A DNA stretch of 64,000 nt, from positions 2,976,001-3,040,000 of the forward strand of contig OZ251225.1 in assembly GCA_965240325.2 (NCBI GenBank). Reading direction: 5' to 3'. Of this stretch, positions 10,542 to 52,881 are shown one piece after another; position 1 is the first letter of the stretch; the number at the start of each line of letters is the position of its first letter. Source of the stretch: Rebecca billardiae RCC1528. Lineage: Eukaryota > Protista > Haptophyta. The position numbers were made by a program, and so were the translations under genes. Below the pieces are notes generated by a model that made no database searches, was not told the origin of the DNA, and worked only from the letters and a program-made list of their open reading frames with translations.

Positions 10542-12590
10542 CAGACGCACGAGAGCTAATAAATGCTCGTGAGAGGAGCAGTCCGAGGTAGTATTATTGA
10601 TAATTACTCATTTAATTTTAAAAAAATCACATATATAAGTATGTAAAAAGCGCGTTACTATACAGTACGTTACACGGCGGTTACACTTACAACCTGAACG
10701 ACCTGAAGTCCACTGGGGATTTGGGCTGCTCGCGTGTTTTGCCCCTGCGGAGGCTTCGGGCACTGCTGGACGACCAGTGATACAATGCGAACCTGGCTGG
10801 TACTCACTCAGCTCCCGCACATATTATTATAAATAATTTCGCACTCGCTTACTGTGTGAAGGATGGCGCGGCAACCTGCCACCGTGAGCCTTACGCGCGT
10901 TAAAACAAATAGACTGTAGTAACGATTAACTCGCGACGGTGCGATGACCCGGGGCTGTGCCCGACGAGTAACGATATGGCGGCGTATGTTAGTCGTTAGA
11001 GGAGAGTACTGCATGGTCAGACAGGCGCCGTGCGGCGCCATCAATAAATAAATGATCTGCTACGCCGATCTTCGGGTAGCTAAACAACGAAGTTGAGGCG
11101 GCGCACGGCGGCCCTAACGTGAACCATAGTTGTCGCGTTCACGAATCAATCACGCGCTGACGCCGAGCTCGTGAGCAGCTGCCGGCTTGTGACAGACACG
11201 GTCACGGTCGGACGGTACTCGACGGTGCATGAGCCGTGCAGCCGAGTCAGCCGACCATGCTGCTCAGTGTAACGGCGACGCAGCGAGGCAGCGAGGCAGA
11301 GCGGCGCGCAAGATCCGACCTCACGGCCGCAGGAGCGCACGGCGCGAGCGGCCCGGCCGCCGTCGTGCCGGTGCACGGCGGCGAGCAGCCGAGCCGACAG
11401 GGTACTGTAGGATAACCGCGACCGATGGCCCCGATGGACTTGCGCCGACCCGATGACTGATGAGCCGACCCGTGGGCACCGCCACACATTGAACATGCGC
11501 GGGCTGCTGCCACAGGGAGGCCCGGGCGGCAGCTTGCTGAATTCTCCTATTCACGAATCGAACATTTTCGCTCGTGAAAAATACCCGGAAAGCTCAGCTG
11601 TGCAAAGCTGTCATAATATATGGCCCAACCGCCGCGGACAAGTCGCCATCAACAAACTCGGATCGCTATATATTAATCAATGGGGGGGGGGTCAAGGGTC
11701 GTACGTGAAGCGGTAGAAATTCTTATGCTCATGATCGAGATTTTCAGGCCCGGCCATCATTCGTTGATGAGTGAATTGATCGATGACTCATCAACAAATG
11801 GTCATATGGGGGTATGCATCAAGCTGTCCCAGATGACGCCGGTCGAGAGCAAGAATGTTCGCCTTCAGGATATTGTGTCGTTCATCTGAAATACAAGAAT
11901 TGGATTGCCACCCGCGCATTGACCTCGAATCAGTATAGACCAAAAGTATATCGGCAAGAGAATCACGAACGGCCCACCATATGAGAAAGGTGCAGGCGTC
12001 TTTTTTCCTATTTGAGTTCCATTTCTTCTATAACTTACTATCTTAAAAATAAAAGGCAGTAGAAACGCAATCAACTGAATCTAATCAAGGGCAGTGCAAT
12101 CCACTCAAATGCGCGTTTCACACCTAATAAATCCACCTACAAAATCCCCAATAATAAAATCCTGCTCGCGCATGCTCTTTTTGGATTTTGCGGGCGTCAC
12201 CCCCCCCCCCCCCCCCCCCGGCTTTCGCTCACGCTCAGACCTTCCGCTCCGGGGGGCGTGCGCGCCATAATACTAGCTAGTCGTCCGCCGCCGGTTTTGT
12301 CATCGCGCGTTTCTGCGAGACGAACGACCGCCGATCGTCGATCTCGGCGGGCGGCTGATGCCTCATTGATCAGCAGACGACTTGTCAGTCGTCCCGGACT
12401 GCCGCAGTCAGTGCCGCACTGTCCGCGTCGTCAGCGCATCATCTTCGGAGTGCGTGTCGCGATCGGCTGATCGCGTCCACTCACCTGCGGGGCTCTGCTG
12501 ACTGCTCCGACGACGATCATCCGCCGCGATGACTTTTACCGGCGGATATTATGATTCTCGCAGCAAGACTACTCGCTCCAGCTCTCTCTC

Positions 12591-14207
12591 TCACGTCGTG
12601 TCGTCAGCCGTCCCGCAGCAGGTCCCCTCTGAGATGCGCTGCCATTCCTTGCAGTGCTGCCTGTGCGCCTTCCACGCCAGCCCCAGGTGGTCGTACGAGC
12701 AGAACACCGCCACACGACACTTGCCGCACTTCTTCAAGGCTCGACTCCCGCGACGGCCCGCCTGTGCCTGTGCACACACCATGCAGCACTTGGACACCAC
12801 CTCGCGATCCCCCGCAAACTCGGCGGCGAGCATTTTCGCAGGGTCGAGATCGGTGTCGAGCTCGTGCGCACGGCGCAGCAGCCGCGCGCCCTCCTTCACA
12901 CTGCGCTCCACTCCGTCACCCGAAAGTGTCAGTCGCCCAAGCTGGTACGAAGCGGCTGGCCAATCGGCATCTGTGGCCAGCCGGTACCACCGCGCCGCCT
13001 CGGCCATGTCCTGCGGCACGCCCTCGCCCTTCTCGCAGCACACACCCAGGTTGAACTGCGCAGTTGCGTGGCCCTGCTCAGCCGCCAGCCGGTACCACCG
13101 CGCTGCCTCGGCCATGTCCTGCGGCACGCCCTCGCCCTTCCGAAAGCACATGCCCAGGTTGTACTGCGCGCCTGCGACGCCCTGCTCGGCCGCCAGCCGG
13201 TACCAGCGCGCCGCCTTGGCCATGTCCTGCGGCACGCCCTCGCCCTTCCGAAAGCACATGCCCAGGTTGTACTGCGCGCCTGCGACGCCCTGCTCGGCCG
13301 CCAGCCGGTACCAGCGCGCCGCCTTGGCCATGTCCTGCGGCACGCCCTCGCCCTTCGAGCAGCACACGCCCAGGTTGTACTGCGCGAATGCGTTGCCCTG
13401 CTCGGCCGCCAGCCGGTACCAGCGCGCCGCCTCGGCCATGTCCTGCGGCACGCCCTCGCCCTTCTCGCAGCACCAGCCCAGGTTGTGCTGCGCACCTGCA
13501 TCGCCCTGCTCGGCCGCCAGCCGGTACCACCGCGCCGCCTCGGCCATGTCCTGCGGCACGCCCTCGCCATTCTCGCAGCACACGCCCAGGTTGCACTGCG
13601 CGGCTGCGTCGCCCTGCTCAGCCGCCAGCCGGTACCACCGCGCCGCCTCGGCCATGTCCTGCGGCACGCCCTCGCCCTTCTTACAGCAGACGCCCAGGTT
13701 GAACTGCGCGTCTGCGAAGCCCTGCTCGGCCGCCAGCCGGTACCACCGCGCCGCCTCGGCCATGTCCTGCGGCACGCCCTCGCCATTCTCGCAGCACCAG
13801 CCCATGCTGCACTGCGCATCTGCGTCGCCCTGCTCGGCCGCCAGCCGGTACCAGCGCGCCGCCTCGGCCATGTCCTGCGGCACGCCCTCGCCCTTCGAGC
13901 AGCACGCGCCCAGATTGCACTGCGCTAATGCGTGGCCCTGCTCGGCCGCCAGCCGGTACCAGTGCACTGCCTCAACCAGATCGCGGTCCAGCCCGCGCTC
14001 GCCCTGGTAATGAAGAACGCCAAGCCTGAACTCTGCGTCTGCAAGCCCACGTTCGGCGGCGACGTGCCACAGGCGCATCGCCTCGCTCCAATTCCGAGCG
14101 ACGCCGTCTCCGCGGGCAAAGCGATTCGCCAGAACGTACGTGGCACGCGCATCACCTCGCGCCGATCTGCGCCGAAGGGAATTGACCGAGGCGCTGGTTT
14201 CATCCAT
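12591..14207 (-). CDS. Sel1-like repeat protein with C-terminal MYND-type zinc finger (9 near-identical 36-aa units)
   Basis: AQxNLGxCxxxGEGVPQDMAEAARWYRLAAEQG repeats; CMVC...CGKC...FCSYDHLGLAWKAHRQHC. Confidence 0.92.
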   Translation of the reverse strand: MDETSASVNSLRRRSARGDARATYVLANRFARGDGVARNWSEAMRLWHVAAERGLADAEFRLGVLHYQGERGLDRDLVEAVHWYRLAAEQGHALAQCNLGACCSKGEGVPQDMAEAARWYRLAAEQGDADAQCSMGWCCENGEGVPQDMAEAARWYRLAAEQGFADAQFNLGVCCKKGEGVPQDMAEAARWYRLAAEQGDAAAQCNLGVCCENGEGVPQDMAEAARWYRLAAEQGDAGAQHNLGWCCEKGEGVPQDMAEAARWYRLAAEQGNAFAQYNLGVCCSKGEGVPQDMAKAARWYRLAAEQGVAGAQYNLGMCFRKGEGVPQDMAKAARWYRLAAEQGVAGAQYNLGMCFRKGEGVPQDMAEAARWYRLAAEQGHATAQFNLGVCCEKGEGVPQDMAEAARWYRLATDADWPAASYQLGRLTLSGDGVERSVKEGARLLRRAHELDTDLDPAKMLAAEFAGDREVVSKCCMVCAQAQAGRRGSRALKKCGKCRVAVFCSYDHLGLAWKAHRQHCKEWQRISEGTCCGTADDTT

Positions 14208-14763: not shown

Positions 14764-15615
14764 TCAGAGCCCATGCGGCACTGCGAGCGTACTGCTCCAT
14801 ATGGCCAGCCCATGGCAGGTGTGCCACGAGCCGATGGCCGTGCCCACGTGCATCAGGGTGTGAGAGCTCGGGCCAAGATCGAAGGCCCCCGGCATGAATC
14901 GCTCAGGCACTCGCAGCACGTACGCAGTGCCGCCGATCAGCGATGGGATGAGCGCACCGGCGGCGTAACGCATCACTGTGCGCGCGAGTGGTGAGCCGGG
15001 GGCCCGCAGGACGAGACGCGCGACCGGTGATGCGGCGAGCAGCATCTGCAAACCGAGCGCTGTTCCGTTCACAAGCTTGCTCGAAGACACGCGGCCACAG
15101 ATCGCGCGGATGGTGACCGCGCAGCAGATGGCCATCACGGCGACGACGAGAGCGCACGCGGCGGGCTGCGCTGTGCCAAACTCGAGCACGGCGGCGCAAG
15201 CGCCAGAAGCGAGGAACATGATCGCGATCGCCGCCTTGTCTGCGCGGAAGAGCATCAGCGACACGCGCTCGGAGACGACGCCAAACGTGTGCGCTGTCGC
15301 CGAGATCCAGTACAGCCCCGCATGCACGGCCGTGCATGCGCGCACTAAGGGCGTGGCTCCGCTGACAGGCGGCCAGAGAGCGACGACGGCGAGGAAGTAG
15401 AACGCCGCGAGCAGGTGTGTCCAGATGTTCCAGGTCTCATTGTGCAGCTCGAATGCTGATGCTGCGGCAGGGCCAAAAGCTCGGTACTCCTCGCCACGGT
15501 AGCCCGAGAGGATGAAGGGCTCCTTGTCTAAGGCATCGCGGCGAGACAGCTGCTCAGCCCCGGCCTTGGCTGCAGAGCCACCTGCCGCCTCTGCGAGCGG
15601 GCGACGTCGGACCAT
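14764..15615 (-). CDS. PAQR / haemolysin-III family (adiponectin-receptor-like) membrane protein
   Basis: ILSGYR, HNETWNIWTHL, SATAHTF, PERFMPGAFDLGPSSHTLMH; about 7 TM helices; start codon uncertain. Confidence 0.9.
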   Translation of the reverse strand: MVRRRPLAEAAGGSAAKAGAEQLSRRDALDKEPFILSGYRGEEYRAFGPAAASAFELHNETWNIWTHLLAAFYFLAVVALWPPVSGATPLVRACTAVHAGLYWISATAHTFGVVSERVSLMLFRADKAAIAIMFLASGACAAVLEFGTAQPAACALVVAVMAICCAVTIRAICGRVSSSKLVNGTALGLQMLLAASPVARLVLRAPGSPLARTVMRYAAGALIPSLIGGTAYVLRVPERFMPGAFDLGPSSHTLMHVGTAIGSWHTCHGLAIWSSTLAVPHGL

Positions 15616-15971
15616 CGCGGGTGCCAAAGGTGAGGTCCCACCGCTACCTTACTCCGGTGACTCCATAGATTCCACGCGCGGCGGCGCCGCGCGACGAAGC
15701 TCTGCATCAAGCTCCGGTTCAAGAGAGAACAACACCGAAGCAGTTTTCGCATCTGCTTCTTTTCCGACTACTTTTCGCCAGCCACTGCCGGTTGTATCGT
15801 GGCGTCCTTGGCGCGCCGAGGGCCGACGGGCGTGGTGCCGCCATCGCGAGGCGTCGCGTGACGCCGCGCCGTGCCCACCACGTCCCCCGGCGTTGGCGGG
15901 CGGCTCGACGCATGAGACGAGGCATAGGCCGTTGGCGTGAAGCCCGGCTCTCGCGCGTGCAGAGGGCTCCG

Positions 15972-17492
15972 ATGGCCCTGCGCGTTCTTCTTTGGGCGTT
16001 GCTCGCGGGCGCGCCTTGGATCACCCTCGGCGTCAGGCCGGAGCCGGAGCAGCAGCCGCTCGAGAGGTTCATCGTGTACACACGCCTGCACTTCGACATG
16101 CCGTATGTGAGCCAGTTCGTGGACTGGTACGTCAGCCTTGGATTCGACCGCATCGTCGCGATCCAGTCCGATGCGGCGCTGGGCAACGCGTACGCGCCCC
16201 ACCCATCGGGCAAGCTGCAGATTCTGCCCGCGTCGTGGGACAGGGGCGACACGCTGCTCCGAGAGTTTAGCCAGCACATTCTGACCGGCGACTACCGCGA
16301 CTGGGTCCTCATGGTAGACTCTGACGAGTTCCTCGTGCTCTCGCAGCCGACCATCCAGGCGTACATGGACTCGCTGCGCGCCGGCCGGCCGTGGAGGGAG
16401 GCGAGGCGCCTCACGAGCGTTCAATTCCGCTGGGCCATCGTGCACCACGATCGGCCCTACTGCGCGCCTGCGATGGCGGCAGCCATCTTGGCGGCCCAGC
16501 CCGCACAGGGCACCTTCCTCCGGCAGATGGCGCGGAGTGACGTGATTCGCGACGTGTTCGACTCGCACCGGTACGCGTTAATACGGATGTACGAGTATAA
16601 TCACTTCGAGGGGGTCGAGCAGCGGATGGATCTCCGGCGGTACCGTGGGTCCACCGCGCACAGCGCCCGCGCCTTTGTCGACTCGGCGGTGGTGCACGTG
16701 GCCACCCGCTCGCTCGCCAACGCGGTGACCAAGCAGCTGGCCCACGCTCACGCCCGAGCCGTGCGCCCCGCCAACGAGTCGTCAAGGCTTGGCGCGCTCG
16801 AGAACAGGTACAACGCCTCCACTGCCAGGCTGGTGCGGCTCATGCACGAGCTCGGCGCGCACACGCCGCCACCGCCCGGCGCCGACGTCGCTGGCCGGCC
16901 GGTGGGGCTGTCCACGGACGACCGAGCCGCGCAGCTGCAGCTCTTTGCCGCCTGGCTGCGCGCGTACGGTGTCAAGGGCGGCGACGCGATCAGCGGGCCG
17001 ACCTCGCTGCGGAGAGGCGACATGGCGGCGTGGGACTGCGGCTACAACCAGTCCGACCTGAACGCGCGCCTGCTGCGCCTGCTCGAGACCTCTCGCGTGC
17101 CCCGCGAGCAGCCCCTGTGCGACGCCGCGCACGAGAGGCGCGCGCTGCAGGCGCTGCTCCGCAAGGAGGGCCTGAGCATCGACGAGTTTGAGCGCTTCGC
17201 GGCGCGGATTGCGGCCGCGCACGCCGAGGTGCTCTCCGCAGTGCGGCGGAAGCCCTTCGCGCCGCTTCCCGCTGAGATCGCAGCAGTGCTGGGCGAGATC
17301 AGCTCTCATCCGAACGCACCGAAGCTGCGGCGGGTTGCCAATGCGACGAGTAACACCACGGAGTGGCAGCTCTTTGTCCCCACCGCGTCGGCTGCAGCAC
17401 CGAGTCATGGTGACGCTGGCGGATGGCCCGAAAGAAATCCGGCCATGTGCGTCCCTTGGGACTTGCCGCTGATCGTCCGGCGTCTTTGGTGA
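15972..17492 (+). CDS. Glycosyltransferase (GT2-like / GT92-like) with N-terminal signal or anchor
   Basis: MALRVLLWALLAG; FVDWYVSLGFDRI; DWVLMVDSDEFL (DxD). Confidence 0.7.
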   Translation: MALRVLLWALLAGAPWITLGVRPEPEQQPLERFIVYTRLHFDMPYVSQFVDWYVSLGFDRIVAIQSDAALGNAYAPHPSGKLQILPASWDRGDTLLREFSQHILTGDYRDWVLMVDSDEFLVLSQPTIQAYMDSLRAGRPWREARRLTSVQFRWAIVHHDRPYCAPAMAAAILAAQPAQGTFLRQMARSDVIRDVFDSHRYALIRMYEYNHFEGVEQRMDLRRYRGSTAHSARAFVDSAVVHVATRSLANAVTKQLAHAHARAVRPANESSRLGALENRYNASTARLVRLMHELGAHTPPPPGADVAGRPVGLSTDDRAAQLQLFAAWLRAYGVKGGDAISGPTSLRRGDMAAWDCGYNQSDLNARLLRLLETSRVPREQPLCDAAHERRALQALLRKEGLSIDEFERFAARIAAAHAEVLSAVRRKPFAPLPAEIAAVLGEISSHPNAPKLRRVANATSNTTEWQLFVPTASAAAPSHGDAGGWPERNPAMCVPWDLPLIVRRLW

Positions 17493-23970: not shown

Positions 23971-25892
23971 ATGGGCACCTGCCAGTCCTCGGCGATCATC
24001 GCGATTCTACAGGCGAACAACCTTATGAGTTGGGACCCGAACTGCAGCATCGAAGGGCGAACGGGTGTGTGCGCGGCCGCAGCCCGGCGCACGCGGACGG
24101 ACGACCCGCGCAGCGCGCCGCGCCCTGCTCATGTGCCGTGCGTGTTCTTCCCCACGTGCCGTGCGTGTTCCATCGTGCGCAGTTGACAGTCCCAACGACA
24201 ATCCTGCCGTTTTCCCGTGCCACATTTACTGCGATTTGGGCTATTCGATAGCTCCGGAATTTGCCGCGGACGAGGCCGTCGAAGGGATCGAAGCCATCTG
24301 CCTGGCGAACGATTGGCTCATGACCGTCGGCGGCGGACAGGGCCTCAACGCGGCGGTCCTCGCGCCGCAGTTGTGCGTGGAAAACACGGGCGTTGTGACG
24401 CCTCTGCCCAGTCCGAGTGCGCGCGCGCGTGCGCGTGCTGCTGCGCCCGCGCCCGAGCGTCGCGCGCGCGCTCGCTCACGCACGGGCCGCTTCTCCGCCC
24501 CTGCCCTCGCCGCCGCGCGCCACAGCGCCATACCCGAGTGCGCGCAGCACACGCCTGCTGCTGCGCCCGCGCTGTGCGTCGCGCGCGCGCGCCCGCTGCT
24601 CGTCACGGGCTGCGCCCCCGCCCCTGCCCTGCCGCTCCGCGCCACAGCGCCCATTCCGACGCCGACGCCCGTTCCCACGCCTTTTCCGTCGCCTACGCCG
24701 ACACCGTCTCCGAGTGCGCGCGCGCGCGCGCGCGCGCTGCTACGCCCGCGGCGCGCATCGCGCGCGCGCCCGCTGATCGTCCCGGGCCGCGCCCCCGCCC
24801 CTGCCGATGCCGCTCCGCGCCACAGCGCCCGTTCCTTCGCCGACGCCGACGCCGACTCCAACTCCGACTCCGGTCCCATCGCCGACACCCACGCCCGTCC
24901 CATCGCCGACGCCGAGTGCGCGCGGGCGCGCGCGCGGCTACGCCCGCGCCGCGCAGCGCGCGCGCGCGCGCTGATCGTCACGGGCCGCGCCCCCGCCCCT
25001 GCCCTTCCGCCGCGCCACAGCGCCCGTTCCGTCGCCGACGCCGACTCCAACTCCAACTCCGAGTGCGCGCGCGCGCACGCGCGCTGCCACGCCCGTGCCG
25101 CGCATATCGCGCGCGCCCGCTGATCGTACGGGCCGCGCCGACGCCCCTGCCGATGCCGCTCCGCGCCACAGCGCCCGTTCCGTCGCCGACGCCGACGCCG
25201 ACTCCAACTCCGACTCCGGTCCCATCGCCGACACCCACGCCCGTCCCATCGCCGACGCCGAGTGCGCGCGCGCGCGCGCTGCTACGCCCGCGCCGCGCAT
25301 CGCGCGCGCGCGCGCTGATCGTCACGGGCCGCGCCCCCGCCCCTGCCCTGCCGCCGCGCCACAGCGCCCGTTCCGTCGCCTACGCCGACTCCAACTCCGA
25401 CTCCGGTCCCATCGCCGACACCCACGCCCGTCCCATCGCCGACGCCGAGTGCGCGCGCGCGCGCGCTGCTACGCCCGCGCCGCGCATCGCGCGCGCGCGC
25501 GCTGATCGTCACGGGCCGCGCCCCCGCCCCTGCCCTGCCGCCGCGCCACAGCGCCCGTTCCGTCGCCGACGCCGACTCCGCTCCCATCGCCGTCACCGAC
25601 GCCCGAGCCTTCGCCCACGCCGCTCCCCTCGCCAAGTCCCGGGCCGCAGCCTTCGCCCACGCCGCTGCCCTCGCCAAGTCCCGCACCCACGCCTGGAGAG
25701 GAGCCCAATGGGCCCGAGCCATCGCCCGCCCCGATCATTTGCCCGGAGAACTGCAGGCCCGCCATCTCGGGAAGCACACGCCGCGCGAGGGCGCTCTCGC
25801 AGCGCGCGCATCGACGCCGGAAGGCGCTGCTCTTTGGCCATTTCGACAAGTTCCATTGCCCCGTCGGATGCGAGCCGGCGGTGGCAGGCTGA
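23971..25892 (+). CDS. Cys-domain + Pro/Ser/Thr-rich (mucin/extensin-like) protein, copy 1; exons 23971-24064, 24183-24416, 24526-24537, 24648-24713, 24826-24915, 25021-25062, 25172-25261, 25365-25448, 25552-25892
   Basis: All introns GT-AG and phase 1; spliced frame open to TGA at 25890-25892; CHIYCDLGY (sushi-like); (TP/SP)n stalk; C-terminal CPENC...RRRKALLFG...CPVGCE; upstream exon possible. Confidence 0.75.
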
Positions 25893-26717
25893 TTCATCCC
25901 TTCACCCGCGCTGGCCTCGCGGGCTGTCTCCAAGATATAGTATTGGCCGACGCGGCCGCCCGCGGCGGCCGGCAGCGCCGTGCCGCAGAGCGGGCGCCGG
26001 GCGGCCGCGCCGGCCGCGCCGGCCGCGCGCGCGCGCGTTGCTCGGAGTTGGAAGAGTCGGCTTCGGATTCGGTCCCAAGGGGTGCGAGCCGGCGGTGGCA
26101 GGCTGACGAGCCCGGGCCCTCTGGGCGCGCCCCGACGAACTATTTAGGGACGATCTCACTCTAGCCAGTTGCCGAGGCGCGCGCGCGCAGATCTTCGACC
26201 GCCCATCTCAGATCGACCTGGTAACGCGCCCTGCGTCGACCTGGCACGCCTCGTGGCGGCCCGGGTCGCCACAGAGCCGCGCGCGGGTGCCACCAAAGCC
26301 AGCGCCAGTGCCTGGCGGCTGGGCGCGCTGAGCTGGCTAGGTGCGATCAGCTGTGAAGTCCGCGTCACGTACTACGTAGCGCGCCGCAGCCGCCCCTCGG
26401 GACTTGCACCGGCCAGGTAGAGGTTGAGGAGTTATGTGCTAAATACAGCATTCACAATTGGCCCGCCGATAGCAGGTGTTCTACTATGTACACTTATTAG
26501 ACGGGTAATTCTGTCCCTCACGCCACGCTGCTGCAACCCGAGCAGGTTACTGTGCTGGAAAAACATCGCAACCGAATTAAATATGGCGGTGTATTTTTCA
26601 GAGTATCATATTACAATGTTTAAATACTACATTGCGTAGTGTTATTTTTTACAAATACCATGTATTATTCGCGTACGTAGTTGTTTTGATTTTGTACATA
26701 GGTACATTAATACTGCG

Positions 26718-33901: not shown

Positions 33902-35904
33902 ATGGGCACCTGCCAGTCCTCGGCGATCATCGCGATTCTACAGGCGAACAACCTCATGAGTTGGGATCCGAACTGCAGCATCGAAGGGCGAACGGGTGTG
34001 TGCGCGGCCGCAGCCCGGCGCACGCGGACGAACCCGCGCCGCGCCATCCTCATTTTCGTCCTCATGTGCCGTGCGTTTGCCATCGTGCGCAGTTAGCTCT
34101 GACGACTTCGCTTGCGACGTCTACTGTGATCTCGGCTACGAGATAGCGCCCGAGTTCGCCGATGACGAGGCCCTCCAAGGTATTAGAGCCTCTTGTCTCT
34201 CCGAGAATACTTGGTTCATGACAGTGGGGGGGCCGCCCGGCAGCCCCGCAGCGGATCTGGCGCCGCAGCTGTGCGTGGCGAATACGGGCGAGGTGACGCC
34301 TCTCCCGTCTCCGAGTGCGCGCGCGCGTGCGCGTGCTGGTACGCCCGCGCCCGAGCGTCGCGCGCGCGCCCGCTCACGCGCGGGCCGGCTTCCCCGCCCC
34401 TGCCCTCGCCACCGCGCGCCACAGCGCCTTACCCGAGTGCGCGCAGCACACGCGTGCTGCTGCGCCCACGCCGTGCGTCGCGCGCGCGCGCCCGCTGCTC
34501 GTCACGGGCTGCGCCCCCGCCCCTGCCCTGCCGCTCCGCGCCACAGCGCCCGTTCCGTCGCCGACGCCGACTCCAACTCCGAGTGCGCGCGCGCGCACGC
34601 GCGCTGCTACGCCCGCGCCGCGCATCGCGCGCGCGCCCGCTGATCGTCACGGGCCGCGCCCCCGCCCCTGCCCTGCCGCTCCGCGCCACAGTCCCGTCGC
34701 CGACGCCCGAGCCATCGCCCGAGCCGTCCCCTGAGCCTTCGCCTGAGCCGTCACCCGAGCCGTCGCCTGAGCCGTCGCCTGAGCCGTCGCCCGAGCCGTC
34801 GCCGAGTGCGCGCAGCACACGCGTGCTGCTACGCCCGCGCCGCGCATGCGCGCGCGCCCGCTGATCGTCCCGGGCCGCGCCCCCGCCCCTGCCGATGCCG
34901 CTCCGCGCCGCAGCGCCCGTCCCGTCGCCTACGCCGACGCCGACTCCAACTCCGACTCCGCTCCCATCGCCGCTCCCCTCGCCAACGCCGACGCCGAGTG
35001 CGCGCGGGCGCGCGCGCGCGTGCTGCTACGCCCGCGCCGCGTATCGCGCGCGCGCCCGCTGATCGTCACGGGCTGCGCTCCCGCCCCTGCTCGCCACCGC
35101 CGCGCCACAGCGCCCGTTCCGTCGCCGACGCCGACGCCTACTCCAACTCCGACTCCGGTCCCATCGCCGACCCCCACGCCCGTCCCATCGCCGCTCCCGT
35201 CGCCGACGCCGACGCCAAGTGCGCGCGGGCGCGCGCGCGGCTACGCCCGCGCCGCGCATCGCGCGCGCGCGCGCTGATCGTCACGGGCCGCGCCCCCGCC
35301 CCTGCCCTGCCGCCGCGCCACAGCGCCTGTTCCGTCGCCTACGCCGACTCCAACTCCGACTCCGCTCCCATCGCCGACTCCCACGCCCGTCCCATCGCCG
35401 CTCCCGTCGCCGACGCCGACGCCGAGTGCGCGCGGGCGCGCGCGCGGCTACGCCCGCGCCGCGCATCGCGCGCGCGCGCGCTGATCGTCACGGGCCGCGC
35501 CCCCGCCCCTGCCCTGCCGCCGCGCCACAGCACCCGTTCCGTCGCCGACGCCGACTCCAACTCCGACTCCGCTCCCATCGCCGTCACCGGCGCCCGAGCC
35601 TTCACCCACGCCGCTGCCCTCGCCGTCTCCCGGGCCGCAGCCTTCCCCCACGCCGCTGCCCTCGCCAAGTCCCGCGCCCAAGCCTGGAGAGGAGCCCAAT
35701 GGACCCGAGCCATCGCCCGCCCCGATCATTTGCCCGGTGAACTGCAGGCCCGCCATCTCGGACGGCAGCACGCGCCGTGCGCTCTCAAGCTCGCGCCAGG
35801 GCGCTCTCTCGCAGCGCGCGAATCGACGCCGGAAGGCGCTGCTCTTTGGCCATTTCGACAAGTTCAAGTGCCCCGTCGGATGCGAGCCGGCGGTGGCAGG
35901 CTGA
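33902..35904 (+). CDS. Cys-domain + Pro/Ser/Thr-rich protein, copy 2; exons 33902-33995, 34093-34314, 34425-34436, 34547-34582, 34692-34805, 34914-34997, 35111-35218, 35324-35425, 35531-35904
   Basis: Paralogue of 23971-25892; all phase-1 GT-AG introns; frame open to TGA at 35902-35904; includes a (PEPS)n exon. Confidence 0.75.
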
Positions 35905-36452
35905 GCACCGTATCGGTCTGATGTCGGAGCGCCGCAGACTCTAAGCAGACCCGCAACGGCCGGCGGGTGGCGGCGTGGGCCGCGCTGGCGGGCGCCGGCC
36001 CGCCCCGGCCGGGGCCCGCGCCCGGCCCCGCCGGCGCCGCCGCCCGGCCGTAGTCGGCTGACAGTCAGCCGACACGGCTGACGTGTCAGCCGGCAGCACC
36101 CTCCCAGCCGCCTGACCGCCTGACACTGTCAGGCAGCCCATCTCGCCACTCGCCTCGGACAGCCTGACACGTGTCAGGTGGTGTCAGTGTTAGATTGACT
36201 CAGGTGTCAGGTGGCCCTCCGCTGTCAAAGGTGAACTGCCCTGCCAGGCTGCACTCCAGCGCGGGCCATCCGTCTGAATCATGAATGACGATGATGATAG
36301 GCATAGCCATAGGGCACTGTCGTCATTGATTTGATGAGTAGCAGACATCATCAATCGCCATCGGGGGTCGGAAGGGACTCGGCTGCAGCATGAGCATGGA
36401 TCGAATCCGCTGCTTGGCGGATATTGATGACTATAATTTATAGTATAAAGAG

Positions 36453-48571: not shown

Positions 48572-51211
48572 ATGCTGGCGTGCTTGCTGGCTGCCGCCGC
48601 GGCGCAGTGCGCTCCATGCAACACGCGCCTGCTTCTCGTCACAGCGTCGCCGCCGGCGGAGCTCGAGAACTCGCCGCTGCTTGCGAGCGCCGCGCGCGGG
48701 GGCACTACCGTCCGCGCCTACCACTTTGGCGAGCCGCTCGAGGAGCGAGGAGCGCGCAAGCGGCCCGAGCTCGTTTCACGTGTCCCCTCAGTGCAGCCGT
48801 GCGCCGTCAGTCCGGCGTGTGGCGGCGCGTTGCTCGATCTCGACGCGATCTACCCGTGGGCGGCTTCGTTCGGCGCGTTTGGCGCGCAGCTGGACACATC
48901 GCACCTCTTCTCCAGAGAGAGCGCGCGGCAGCAGGAGGCGACGGGCGCGGCGCTGCGGCTGCGCGCGAGACGGTCATTTTTCAAGGTGCTCGCCCTCAGG
49001 CACACCGTCGTCGACGAGCCGTCGCCCGCCGCGCGCGCCGTGCCCGTCATCATCTGGGCGGATGCGTCCGCGCGGCTCGCCGGCGATGCGGGCGCCGCCT
49101 TCTCCGCCTTCATGGCGCGGTACGACGTGGCCGTGGGCTACAGGTACGCCAGGCGAGCGCCCAGGGCGGGCACGTGCGGGCCGAAACTGCAGCACGCGAA
49201 GCCGCCTGCGCCCCTCCTCTTCGAGCCCGACTTGCCGCTGACTGACGTGATCGCGCTGCGCGTGGGCGACGCCGCGGCCGCGGGCGCGCGGGCTGGTGCG
49301 GACGGCGGCGCGGCGGCGAGGCGGCCGCCGTTCGCCCAGGCCCGCGCCTGGGCGCAGCGGGAGCGTGCGGAGGCGCTCGTCGTGGCGTGGGCTGCTCGCT
49401 TCGCGACGCGCGGTGCCGCGCGCGCGTCTTGCCTCTCCGACGCGTGCGTGTACGACTCGATCTTGCGGCGCGGCGTCCGCGGCGCCGAGGCGGCGCCGCC
49501 GCCCGCGGCCGACGACCTCGGCGTGTGCGTGCGCTCGGGCCGCGCAAGGTGTGAGCCGGCGGCGGACGGCGTCGCGGCCGCGCTCCTGCCGCCCGCGCGG
49601 CTCGAGAGCCTCGTCACGGGCACGCCCCGCGAGAACGCCTCCGATCTCGAGCGCGTCTCGGCCGCGCTCCGGCTCGAGCGCTGGCTCTCTGCCTATCTGC
49701 GCCGCCCGGCGGCGGCGCCCGCGCTGGCGGAGGGCTGGCTGGCCACGTGCGCGCGGCCGAGCGCCGACGAGCTGGGTGGCGGCGTGTACGGCGGCGTGGA
49801 GGGCTCGGGCGGGCGCGTCTGCCCGCGCGAGGCGCCCGCCGCGTCGCCCTTCCACCTCGACGACTACTTCGCCCTCGCAGCGCCGCCCGCCCACTCGCCG
49901 CGCGGCGCGCGCGCCGCGCGCGCCGCCGTTGGCTCGCGCTCGAGACCAGCCGCGCGGCACGCATGGGTTGGCGCGCCGGCGCGCGCCGCCGCGGGGCTTC
50001 GCAGCGTCAACCCAGAGCTCAGGGGAAGCGCGCTGTCGTACGCCGAGCTCAACCGCTCGCTGCCCGGCGGGCCGGCGTCGACGGCGTCGCTGCGCGAGTG
50101 CGGCGCGGACGCGGACGCGGAGCGGCTCCGTCTGCAGCTGCGCGTGCTGGGCGTGTGCGCGTGCCAGCTGCCGCCCGCGGTGGGCGGGCGGCTCACGGCG
50201 GCGCAGAGCGCAGACCGGCGCGTGGCGCGGCGCTTCGTGATGCCCGCCAAGAGCGGCCTCGGCTCCGAGCTCTCCGCGCTCCCCAAGGCGCTCGGCTGGG
50301 CCTTCAGCCGCGGCGCGGCGTTCCTCGACCCCGAGCTGAAGCGCCCGGACTGCGAAGGCAGCCCGCTCAGCGGCTGCCTCGGGCTGCTGCCCGTGGACGG
50401 GTGCGACCCGGGCGTCGAGCCCTTCGTCGCGCGCGAGGCGCGCGCGCGGCGCAGCGCCGGGCTGCCGCGCGCGCGCGGCGACACGCACGCGTTCGCGCGA
50501 AGCAAGCCGGCGCGCTCGACCGTCCCAGACGCGTACGCTCACCGCGGCGTCTTCTGGTGGACGTCGGCCATGCTGGGGCAGCTGCTGCGCCCCGCCCCGC
50601 CGCTGCGCGAGCACCTGCGCGAGCTGCGGGCTGGGTGGGGCTGGACGCCCGCGCGGCGCGTGCTCGGGCTGCACGTGCGCCGCGGCGACATCTGCGCGCT
50701 CAGCGACGGCACCGACCTCGCCCACGAGCAGCAGCGCACCGGGCGCACGTGCGACGGGCTCGCGCAGTACGCGCCCGCGGTGCGCGAGATGGTGCGCGCG
50801 CACGCGCTCGACGCCGTCTTCCTCGCGACGGACGACGATGCGGTCGTGCGCGAGGCGCGCGCGCACGCGCCCACGCTGCTCGGCGTGGCGCGAACGGCCG
50901 TGTACGTCGTCGCGGCCAACCGGAGCGCGCTGTACGGCACGGGCACGTACTACGACCGCGCGCTCAAGGCCGGCATGATCGACGCGGCCGCGGACGCGCG
51001 CGCGTTCCTCGTCGACCTGATGCTCCTCGCGGAGGCCGACGCGTTTGTCGGCAAGTTCACATCGAACATCGCGCGGATCGCGTTTGCGCTGTCCAACGCG
51101 CGCAAGGGCGGCGACTGCGTCGTGCCCTTCTACTCGCTCGACGCGACGTGGTGCGCCGATGCGGGCAAGAAGCGCGCCGGCTGGTCGATCTACGGGACCT
51201 TCACGTGCTGA
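48572..51211 (+). CDS. Secreted/Golgi glycosyltransferase with C-terminal alpha-1,6-fucosyltransferase-like (FUT8/NodZ, GT23) domain
   Basis: Signal-like N-terminus; LGLHVRRGD, VFLATDD, DLMLLAEADAFVGKFTSNIARIA. Confidence 0.8.
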   Translation: MLACLLAAAAAQCAPCNTRLLLVTASPPAELENSPLLASAARGGTTVRAYHFGEPLEERGARKRPELVSRVPSVQPCAVSPACGGALLDLDAIYPWAASFGAFGAQLDTSHLFSRESARQQEATGAALRLRARRSFFKVLALRHTVVDEPSPAARAVPVIIWADASARLAGDAGAAFSAFMARYDVAVGYRYARRAPRAGTCGPKLQHAKPPAPLLFEPDLPLTDVIALRVGDAAAAGARAGADGGAAARRPPFAQARAWAQRERAEALVVAWAARFATRGAARASCLSDACVYDSILRRGVRGAEAAPPPAADDLGVCVRSGRARCEPAADGVAAALLPPARLESLVTGTPRENASDLERVSAALRLERWLSAYLRRPAAAPALAEGWLATCARPSADELGGGVYGGVEGSGGRVCPREAPAASPFHLDDYFALAAPPAHSPRGARAARAAVGSRSRPAARHAWVGAPARAAAGLRSVNPELRGSALSYAELNRSLPGGPASTASLRECGADADAERLRLQLRVLGVCACQLPPAVGGRLTAAQSADRRVARRFVMPAKSGLGSELSALPKALGWAFSRGAAFLDPELKRPDCEGSPLSGCLGLLPVDGCDPGVEPFVAREARARRSAGLPRARGDTHAFARSKPARSTVPDAYAHRGVFWWTSAMLGQLLRPAPPLREHLRELRAGWGWTPARRVLGLHVRRGDICALSDGTDLAHEQQRTGRTCDGLAQYAPAVREMVRAHALDAVFLATDDDAVVREARAHAPTLLGVARTAVYVVAANRSALYGTGTYYDRALKAGMIDAAADARAFLVDLMLLAEADAFVGKFTSNIARIAFALSNARKGGDCVVPFYSLDATWCADAGKKRAGWSIYGTFTC

Positions 51212-51606: not shown

Positions 51607-52881
51607 ATGGACGAAGCCACCGCCGCGGTGGAGCTGCTTGGGCGCAGATCGGCACGAGGTGACGCACGTGCCACGTACCTTCTGGCTGATCGCCTCGCAC
51701 GTGGAGACGGCGTCGCTCAGAACGAGCGCGAGGCGGCGCGCCTGTTCAACATCGCCGCCGAGCGCGGGCTGGTGGAAGCTCAGTGTGCACTTGGCAAATG
51801 CAATCATCAGGGCCTGCTTGGACTGGACCAAAACCTTCTCCAGGCGGTGCGCTGGTACCGGCTGGCCGCCGAGCAGGGCGACGCAGCCGCGCAGTTCAAC
51901 CTGGGCGTCTGCTGTACGAAGGGCGAGGGCGTGCCGCAGGACATGGCCGAGGCGGCGCGGTGGTACCGGCTGGCGGCCGAGCAGGGCGACGCAGCCGCGC
52001 AGTTCAACCTGGGCGTCTGCTGCGAGAAGGGCGAGGGCGTGCCGCAGGACATGGCCGAGGCGGCGCGGTGGTACCGGCTGGCGGCCGAGCAAGGCCACGC
52101 AGTAGCGCAGTGCAACATGGGCGTGTGCTGTAAGAAGGGCGAGGGCGTGCCGCAGGACATGGCCGAGGCGGTGCGGTGGTACCGGCTGGCGGCCGAGCAG
52201 GGCTACGCAGTAGCACAGTGCAGCATGGGCGTGTGCTGCCACAGGGGCGAGGGCGTGCCGCAGGACATGGCCGAGGCGGCGCGGTGGTACCGGCTGGCGG
52301 CCGAGCAGGGCTACGCAGACGCGCAGTTCATCCTGGGCGTCTGCTGTCAGAATGGCGAGGGCGTGCCGCAGGACATGGCCGAGGCGGCGCGGTGGTACCG
52401 GCTGGCGGCCGAGCAGGGCGACGCAGCCGCGCAGTTCAACCTGGGCGTCTGCTGTCAGAATGGCGAGGGCGTGCCGCAGGACATGGCCGAGGCGGCGCTG
52501 TGGTTCGGGCTGGCTGCTGATGGTGATCAGCCACACGCTATGGTGGGGCTTGGAGCGCTGATGCTGTTGGGTCAGGGCGTGGAGCGCGATGTGGCGCAGG
52601 GCGCGCGGCTGGTGCGCCGTGGGCACGAGCTTGACAGCACTCTCGACCCCTGCAAAATTCTCGTCGAGGACTTTTCGGGGGAGCTCGAGGTCGTGTCCAA
52701 GTGCTGCCTCGTCTGCGCCAAGACGGGGCGTGGCCTCAAGAAATGCGACCGATGTCACGTGGCAGTGTTCTGCTCACACGACCACCTGCGCCGCGCGTGG
52801 AAGGCGCACAAGCCGCACTGCAACAAGTGGCGGCAGAGAGATGAGACGAGATCGAGACTCACGGATCCCAATGGCAATTGA
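51607..52881 (+). CDS. Sel1-like repeat protein with C-terminal MYND-type zinc finger (6 near-identical units)
   Basis: Paralogue of 12591-14207; CLVC...CDRC...FCSHDHLRRAWKAHKPHC. Confidence 0.92.
   Translation: MDEATAAVELLGRRSARGDARATYLLADRLARGDGVAQNEREAARLFNIAAERGLVEAQCALGKCNHQGLLGLDQNLLQAVRWYRLAAEQGDAAAQFNLGVCCTKGEGVPQDMAEAARWYRLAAEQGDAAAQFNLGVCCEKGEGVPQDMAEAARWYRLAAEQGHAVAQCNMGVCCKKGEGVPQDMAEAVRWYRLAAEQGYAVAQCSMGVCCHRGEGVPQDMAEAARWYRLAAEQGYADAQFILGVCCQNGEGVPQDMAEAARWYRLAAEQGDAAAQFNLGVCCQNGEGVPQDMAEAALWFGLAADGDQPHAMVGLGALMLLGQGVERDVAQGARLVRRGHELDSTLDPCKILVEDFSGELEVVSKCCLVCAKTGRGLKKCDRCHVAVFCSHDHLRRAWKAHKPHCNKWRQRDETRSRLTDPNGN

Follow-up and report, generated by a model that had tools for sequence, protein, structure and literature searches.

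What does a protein do in which one half of every repeat unit is almost frozen and the other half changes from unit to unit? The question is raised by a gene in a stretch of 64,000 nucleotides from the haptophyte Rebecca billardiae RCC1528 (GenBank assembly GCA_965240325.2, contig OZ251225.1, positions 2,976,001 to 3,040,000 of the forward strand), which as a whole is referred to here as the window. The gene lies at 12591..14207 on the minus strand and is a complete, intronless coding sequence of 538 amino acids plus stop, defined by the open frame from the start Met, by Pfam and by an AlphaFold2 model; its product is predicted to be a superhelix of Sel1-like repeats (SLR) with a cap at either end and, after the second cap, a MYND zinc finger. 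At the hypervariable codons of the repeats, replacement of amino acids outpaces silent change several-fold, which is selection for diversity. The protein is probably an adaptor or sensor that combines a groove, diversified along the first helix (helix A) of each unit, with a constant MYND finger, and that belongs to a concertedly evolving family.

Hypervariable codons and concerted evolution

The Sel1 array occupies 12966..13937 on the minus strand (residues 91-414) and comprises nine units of 108 bp (36 aa), as resolved by Tandem Repeats Finder and a per-codon table. At 12976-13961 the program finds a 108-bp period repeated 9.1 times, with 90% matches and no indels. The array was cut in the register G1...Q36 and the codons were tabulated per unit; the ninth unit is complete up to codon 33 only, and the statistics of rate and variability use the eight complete core units, with the cap units left out. 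Apart from E/K at codon 25 and a small number of silent changes, codons 16-36 are invariant across units. Variability is greatest at codons 2, 4, 7, 11 and 14 and smaller at codons 8, 9, 13 and 15. The hypervariable (hv) set was defined as unit codons 2, 4, 7, 8, 11, 14 and 15, and all other codons are termed the scaffold. Among the eight units, 16 of the 21 hv nucleotides segregate, versus 7 of 87 in the scaffold (Fisher p = 7e-10); one pair of units has no difference at the 87 scaffold nucleotides and 12 differences at the 21 hv nucleotides (p = 1e-10). The first-pass annotation had described nine 108-bp units with a constant and a hypervariable half; the per-codon table reproduces its motif exactly, and the Fisher test bears out the division.

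Over the eight units (288 residues) the mean pairwise identity is 89.7% at the nucleotide and 83.5% at the amino acid level, and the amino acid identity to the unit consensus is 88.5%. The internal scaffold identity, 0.96, is the highest of 51 genes examined. Self-comparison at shift 108 further reveals an exact tandem duplication of 247 nt at 13110..13356 (minus strand), with perfect 108-nt periodicity over 2.29 copies and an offset of half a unit from the Sel1 register. Units 6 and 7 share one hv signature because of this duplication, which marks a very recent gain of a unit. The repeat array region (12001-14000) has a GC skew of -0.21.

The replacement excess was measured by counting methods only, namely NG86-type proportions of replacement (pN) and silent (pS) differences and counts of codon differences that keep or change the amino acid. 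pN at the hv codons is 0.404 versus a scaffold pS of 0.084, a ratio of 4.8; the scaffold codons that are interleaved with hv codons in helix A give a pS of 0.087. Expressed as minimum events, the hv codons have undergone at least 19 replacements, versus no fewer than 9 silent changes over the entire unit. The pN/pS of the scaffold is 0.20, which indicates purifying selection, and the gene is therefore functional and not decaying. The silent sites inside the hv codons were dropped as a neutral yardstick, there being only 3.5 of them, with ambiguous multi-step paths that count replacements as silent.

The same measurements were extended to a family sample in which 40 loci yielded 49 paralogues; together with the two Sel1-MYND genes of the window these make up the 51 genes, with 489 ungapped 36-residue units. 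The ratio of pN(hv) to pS(scaffold) is above 1 in every one of the 51 genes (median 2.7), and the excess of non-synonymous change anticipated by the first-pass annotation was thus found throughout. Family-wide, pairs of units that have no more than two scaffold differences show 1606 differences in the hv codons that change the amino acid and 75 that are silent, which corresponds to 21 replacements per silent change where the counts of sites alone predict about 5:1. Hv and scaffold codons succeed each other at intervals of one to three codons, so that no ordinary conversion tract could homogenise the scaffold and spare the hv codons. The hv codons must be ones at which diversity is favoured or, at a minimum, shielded from homogenisation.

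Mutagenesis of the type driven by diversity-generating retroelements was rejected as a cause: the changes are not limited to template adenines and no reverse transcriptase lies nearby. We also note that the third base of hv codon 4 is mostly T across the family (239 of 489 units, as GAT, GCT, CGT and GGT), with the first two bases varying, and that T-ending codons are otherwise rare in the family genes (10-12% for Ala, Gly and Arg). It appears that an ancestral silent T was kept at this codon as the replacement sites diversified.

In the window's own assembly (72 Mb, from a GC-rich alga), at least 228 candidate loci of the Sel1-MYND family turned up in a six-frame search, many of them clustered on contigs C5, C3 and C10; the assembly also contains at least 264 MYND candidates. 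The 80 family loci that were scored are 57-85% identical, most with the same full-length architecture. Across the 489 units, positional entropy is 2.5-3.6 bits at hv positions 2, 4, 7, 8, 11, 14 and 15 and below 0.4 bits at G1, A5, L9, G16, G18, E25, A26, R28, A33 and A34. The hv positions form 437 distinct seven-residue signatures, and the number of units per paralogue ranges from 5 to 19.

The scaffold is alike between units at silent sites as well. Its silent codons are specific to position, with GCA at A3, GCG at A5, GCC at A24 and A34, GCG at A33, CGC at R28 and CGG at R31. Codon bias was rejected as the cause, since the Ala and Arg positions differ among themselves in the favoured synonymous codon; the silent-site identity between units is best read as identity by descent. 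Compared with its paralogues, the gene has a pS of 0.10-0.30 in the repeat scaffold and mostly 0.3-0.6 in the caps and the MYND region. This distribution of silent differences indicates that the repeats were homogenised after gene duplication, by exchange within and between paralogues, that is, by concerted evolution. A second Sel1-MYND paralogue in the window, at 51607..52881 on the plus strand (424 aa; eight Pfam Sel1 matches and zf-MYND at 29.2 bits), lies 38 kb from the gene on the opposite strand. This neighbour is nearest in DNA to several units of the gene; the closest relatives (93-97%) of one unit sit in it and are closer than most units within the gene itself; between the two genes the scaffold pS is 0.10 and the pS of the termini 0.36-0.39.

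Predicted groove and MYND finger

Pfam finds PF08238 (Sel1) in ten stretches of the protein, each spanning 1-36 of the 36-position profile (E 5e-123, 397.6 bits against a cut-off of 30.7), and zf-MYND (PF01753) at residues 475-519 (24.4 bits, the threshold being 22.7). No NACHT or NB-ARC domain was found, Sel1 and zf-MYND being the only Pfam families above their cut-offs. For the AlphaFold2 model, 30 aligned paralogues served as input; its mean predicted local distance difference test score (pLDDT) is 90.5, with about 98 along the solenoid and 43-63 in the MYND finger. In the core units of the model 13-residue helices alternate, helix A spanning unit positions 3-15 and helix B positions 23-35. 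The N-terminal cap (13938..14207, minus strand; residues 1-90) is modelled as two and a half divergent Sel1-like units with helices from H6-16 to H77-89. Its start Met and N-terminal motif are common to most paralogues examined, and the cap is kept among paralogues, yet pS there is 0.14-0.7 between genes. At the other end, a capping Sel1-like unit and linker (12813..12965, minus strand; residues 415-465; helices H417-429, H437-450 and H456-464) is conserved in the alignment of 27 paralogues. Solenoid and finger account for the whole length of the modelled protein.

Foldseek matches the model to the SLR crystal structures 6ok3 and 4bwr with a probability of 1.00 and TM scores of 0.72-0.75. Further matches are 8sxq, HcpC and SEL1L, and superhelices of tetratricopeptide repeats (TPR) are more distant. 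The protein is acidic (pI 5.8, charge about -8) and its longest hydrophobic run is at most six residues; it is therefore probably soluble and intracellular.

Six of the seven hv positions (4, 7, 8, 11, 14 and 15) fall inside helix A of the model and position 2 just before it. On a helical wheel drawn from the sequence these six positions span an arc of 120 degrees, and the conserved positions 5, 6, 9, 10, 12 and 13 fill the rest. The A helices form the concave surface of SLR proteins (PMC4746701), and the ligand-contact positions on the concave side of TPR proteins are 2, 5, 6, 9, 12 and 13, with variable loop positions at 33/34 (PMC1261162). The shared N-L-G...Y motif sets the register of the Sel1 unit at TPR position + 2; in that register hv positions 4, 7, 8, 11, 14 and 15 coincide with TPR positions 2, 5, 6, 9, 12 and 13, and position 2 corresponds to TPR loop 33/34. 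By analogy with these families, the face of helix A that carries the hv residues would be the concave groove. The first-pass annotation had taken the first helix of TPR and SLR units to line the groove, which agrees with both published descriptions and with the coincidence of the hv codons with the TPR contact positions. Its proposal that the variable sites lie on the concave face holds as far as their clustering on one face of helix A is concerned, and the assignment of that face to the groove follows from homology and periodicity.

The MYND-type finger (12651..12785, minus strand; residues 475-519) is identified by PF01753 and by Cys/His columns that are invariant in 27 paralogues. Zinc ligands of MYND domains are normally of the C4-C2HC type (PMC3555993), and the domain is a protein-protein module that binds PxLxP motifs, as demonstrated for ETO, BS69 and DEAF-1 (PMC3555993, PMC4742278). 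The finger described here has canonical spacing and seven canonical ligands out of eight; the sixth is His, which makes it a C4-CHHC variant. This His is invariant in the 27 paralogues and aligns with the canonical Cys of the SMYD2 MYND domain. Histidine can bind zinc, but the fold of the finger is modelled only at the low pLDDT given above. The likeness to the MYND domains of ETO, BS69/ZMYND11, DEAF-1 and SMYD proteins thus consists of the profile match, the spacing and seven of the eight ligands, whereas the His at the sixth ligand and the fusion to a Sel1 solenoid, instead of to chromatin or SET modules, set the finger apart.

In the adaptor or sensor that we propose, the groove would bind a variable protein or peptide target, to which each unit could contribute six or seven specificity residues. 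Point substitution may create new specificities, as may the gain, loss and shuffling of units. The MYND finger, which is constant, may dock the protein to a common partner through a PxLxP-type motif, as other MYND domains do, and the protein would in this way join many targets to one output.

Near-identical units, a few combinatorially variable residues and arrays of 5-19 units are also features expected of a code-like reader of nucleic acids, in which each unit reads one base through its variable residues in the manner of transcription activator-like effectors (TALE), pentatricopeptide repeat (PPR) proteins or Pumilio. Such a reader is hardly credible here: the protein carries the negative charge given above, and its 63 hv residues have a net charge of only +1. 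Seven positions with 437 signatures among 489 units go far beyond the needs of a four-letter code, and the solved SLR proteins are described as binders of proteins or peptides.

The closest structural relatives in eukaryotes include SEL1L and Hrd3, which brings to mind a selector of substrates for quality control or ubiquitination, in which the Sel1 solenoid would pick clients and the MYND finger would dock a ligase or chaperone, in a housekeeping or developmental role and not in the recognition of non-self. SEL1L/Hrd3 in endoplasmic-reticulum-associated degradation (ERAD) and the Sel1-containing U-box or F-box proteins offer the analogy, and land plants have F-box/Sel1-like/MYND proteins. Families of Sel1-repeat U-box ligases respond to sexual reproduction in a diatom (PMC7335047), which is a further point in favour. 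We regard a role of this kind as quite improbable, since Pfam and hydrophobicity reveal no F-box, U-box, RING or transmembrane segment in the protein, and since a replacement excess throughout the family, unique signatures by the hundred and continuing gain of units are unexpected for housekeeping adaptors.

Other Sel1 arrays and known repeat receptors

A word search with the whole protein listed 120 matches, all of them long bacterial or metagenomic Sel1 proteins, and PF01753 occurs in none of these 120. The list is dominated by summed repeat scores and is uninformative for orthology; it was reused as a control set, from which 1036 units were cut. The control arrays vary at the same unit positions as the family (Spearman 0.80), and their within-protein identities are nearly equal to those of the family at hv positions (0.26 vs 0.25) and at the others (0.73 vs 0.77). 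The amino acid pattern of the variable positions is thus a general property of Sel1 arrays, and since the bacterial controls share it, the protein pattern alone marks no special system. What is particular to this family is the scaffold identity at the nucleotide level, the replacement excess, the size of the family, the exchange between genes and the fusion to MYND.

Together with this generality of the pattern, several other points weigh against an adaptor or sensor with a selected groove. The hv set was picked because it is variable, which entails an ascertainment effect. The yardstick consists of scaffold silent sites, which are themselves homogenised, so that the ratio measures "faster than homogenisation" as well as "faster than mutation". 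The NG86 pS inside the hv codons is raised (0.34), and the pN/pS internal to these codons is only about 1.2. The orientation toward the groove was assigned from the helix assignment, helical periodicity and TPR/SLR homology; the finger is poorly modelled and has a non-canonical ligand. Finally, the role itself is proposed from sequence and model.

The control arrays, some of which reach scaffold identities of 0.91-0.95, and the low internal pN/pS are also what would be expected of a generic Sel1 scaffold in a recently amplified family. On that account the variable sites would be unconstrained exposed residues of helix A and the frozen scaffold would result from recent tandem duplication and gene conversion, with neither adaptive diversification nor a special part in recognition. 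Neutral sites, however, cannot outpace interleaved silent sites of the same history, and pN(hv) exceeds pS(scaffold) in every gene of the sample. The 21 replacements per silent difference at the hv codons, and the unit pair with all of its 12 differences in the hv set, likewise speak against neutrality. Moreover, conversion that homogenises codons 3, 5-6, 9-10 and 12-13 would erase diversity at codons 2, 4, 7, 8, 11 and 14 unless that diversity were favoured. A merely generic scaffold is therefore unlikely.

The closest precedent for a selected groove is found in the NOD-like receptors (NLR) of fungi. Their WD40, ANK and TPR repeats display high internal conservation (HIC), concerted evolution within and between paralogues and variation in repeat number, with positive selection on a few codons per repeat at the binding face (the concave one in TPR; PMC4986451). 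The criterion applied to them is an internal conservation of at least 85% over at least 100 residues (PMC4986451); the array described here has 88.5% to the consensus over 288 residues. The likeness drawn by the first-pass annotation to these STAND proteins (HET-E/D/R, NWD; Paoletti 2007, Dyrka 2014) is therefore apt, and extends to near-identical repeats, concerted evolution, variation in the number of units and a replacement excess at a few codons (PMC4986451). Unlike the fungal receptors, the protein has no NACHT/NB-ARC and no N-terminal effector domain; its repeat is Sel1 and its sole other module is the MYND finger at the C-terminus. It is encoded by a unicellular alga, in a family far larger than NLR HIC sets typically are.

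The candidate pathogen receptors of the brown alga Ectocarpus, of the NB-ARC-TPR and ROCO-LRR types, offer another comparison. Their diversity is ascribed to the shuffling of exons in genes with NB-ARC or ROC-COR (Zambounis 2012, PMC3341825; PMC11378527). They too are fast-evolving algal families of repeat proteins that were proposed as variable receptors on the evidence of sequence alone. The present array differs from them in being a single exon that changes by substitution and by duplication or conversion of units, and in having no NTPase domain. The known Sel1-like repeat proteins (EsiB/c5321, 4bwr; Oxalobacter, 6ok3; LceB, 8sxq; LpnE, 6deh; HcpC, 1ouv; SEL1L) belong to the same repeat family and share the fold (phmmer E 1e-84), but they are encoded by single genes or small families, are mostly secreted or membrane-associated and are without MYND.

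The first-pass annotation had proposed a variable recognition receptor coupled to a MYND finger in place of a NOD (nucleotide-binding oligomerisation domain). The finger, the absence of a NOD domain among the Pfam matches and the replacement excess agree with that proposal, the amino acid pattern on which it drew is shared with bacterial Sel1 arrays, and the receptor role, like any connection with viral infection, would be an extrapolation from these features. In its widest form the idea makes the family a germline-encoded, NOD-less repertoire of intracellular receptors for viral, bacterial, parasite or conspecific proteins, in which shuffling and substitution of units would create specificities and the non-canonical MYND finger would connect them to a common downstream partner. 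We offer this only tentatively and consider it doubtful.

Highly internally conserved repeats under diversifying selection are known from the fungal receptors; those of the present family form a Sel1 solenoid with MYND and without NOD. Well over a hundred Sel1-MYND genes with a frozen scaffold and fast-changing residues of the predicted groove present the signature that first drew attention to the fungal NLR repeats and to the brown-algal candidate receptors, and the signature occurs here without a nucleotide-binding switch. Haptophytes are major ocean phytoplankton engaged in arms races with giant viruses and bacteria, and we know of no receptor-type immune repertoire in them. If the arrays bind foreign or non-self proteins, the combination of constant scaffold, diversified face and concerted evolution would have arisen once more, this time with a Sel1 solenoid and a zinc finger as output, and the genes would be candidates for virus resistance in phytoplankton. 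Should the germline NOD-less repertoire exist, it would represent a type of immune-like or allorecognition system that has so far been described in no lineage. Failing a role in recognition, the arrays would be natural analogues of designed consensus-repeat binders. To this picture the present gene adds the most homogeneous array of the 51, an exact duplication of units, the exchange with the second Sel1-MYND gene at a distance of 38 kb, the control with bacterial arrays and the variant MYND ligand.

Relatives beyond this genome were sought with the C-terminal part. A word search with residues 405-538 returned nothing at E <= 1e-5, and a search of viral contigs and JGI metagenomes with the C-terminal module found no relative, which is weak evidence of absence given the few back-translated patterns used. 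In a profile search of 1.84 billion representatives only P0139 and P0258, among the matches listed, cover the whole C-terminal module. The profile had kept the last Sel1-like unit, so that the top 150 matches are long Sel1 arrays and the match counts are uninformative on the spread of Sel1-MYND. P0139 and P0258 derive from GC-rich contigs (62-68% GC), have divergent and not near-identical units, and in both of them ligand 6 of MYND is still the canonical Cys; P0139 in addition shares the N-terminal motif of the present protein. Judging from these two sequences, the Sel1-MYND architecture exists outside this genome. The frozen scaffold and the His variant look like features of the expansion in this lineage, on a thin sampling of two outside relatives. 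A full-text search of the literature found no publication that links Sel1 and MYND in haptophytes.

Flanks and neighbouring genes

Over 1 kb on either side, the gene has nothing in common with its closest paralogue, L012, though the pS of the coding termini is only 0.14-0.18 between the two; residual flank similarity (75-85%) exists only with another family locus, L003. Either the coding sequence alone was transferred or converted between the gene and L012, or the flanks turn over quickly. Five family loci, among them L001 (G000:C5:4212064-4213635), carry one in-frame stop (TAA, TGA or TAG) and are otherwise full-length; they are candidates for pseudogenes or assembly errors.

No mobile-element gene adjoins the Sel1-MYND gene at 12591..14207. 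Upstream of it lie a gene for a membrane protein of the haemolysin-III/PAQR type (14764-15627, minus strand; PF03006, E 8e-24) and one with a weak match to glycosyltransferase family 2 (15792-17492, plus strand). Directly upstream of the second Sel1-MYND gene, an open reading frame of 879 aa at 48572-51211 (plus strand) has a C-terminal domain like that of alpha-1,6-fucosyltransferases (PF19745, E 1e-8). Two 2-kb blocks of the window, 24001-26000 and 34001-36000, have a GC content of 75-76% and a GC skew of about -0.19.

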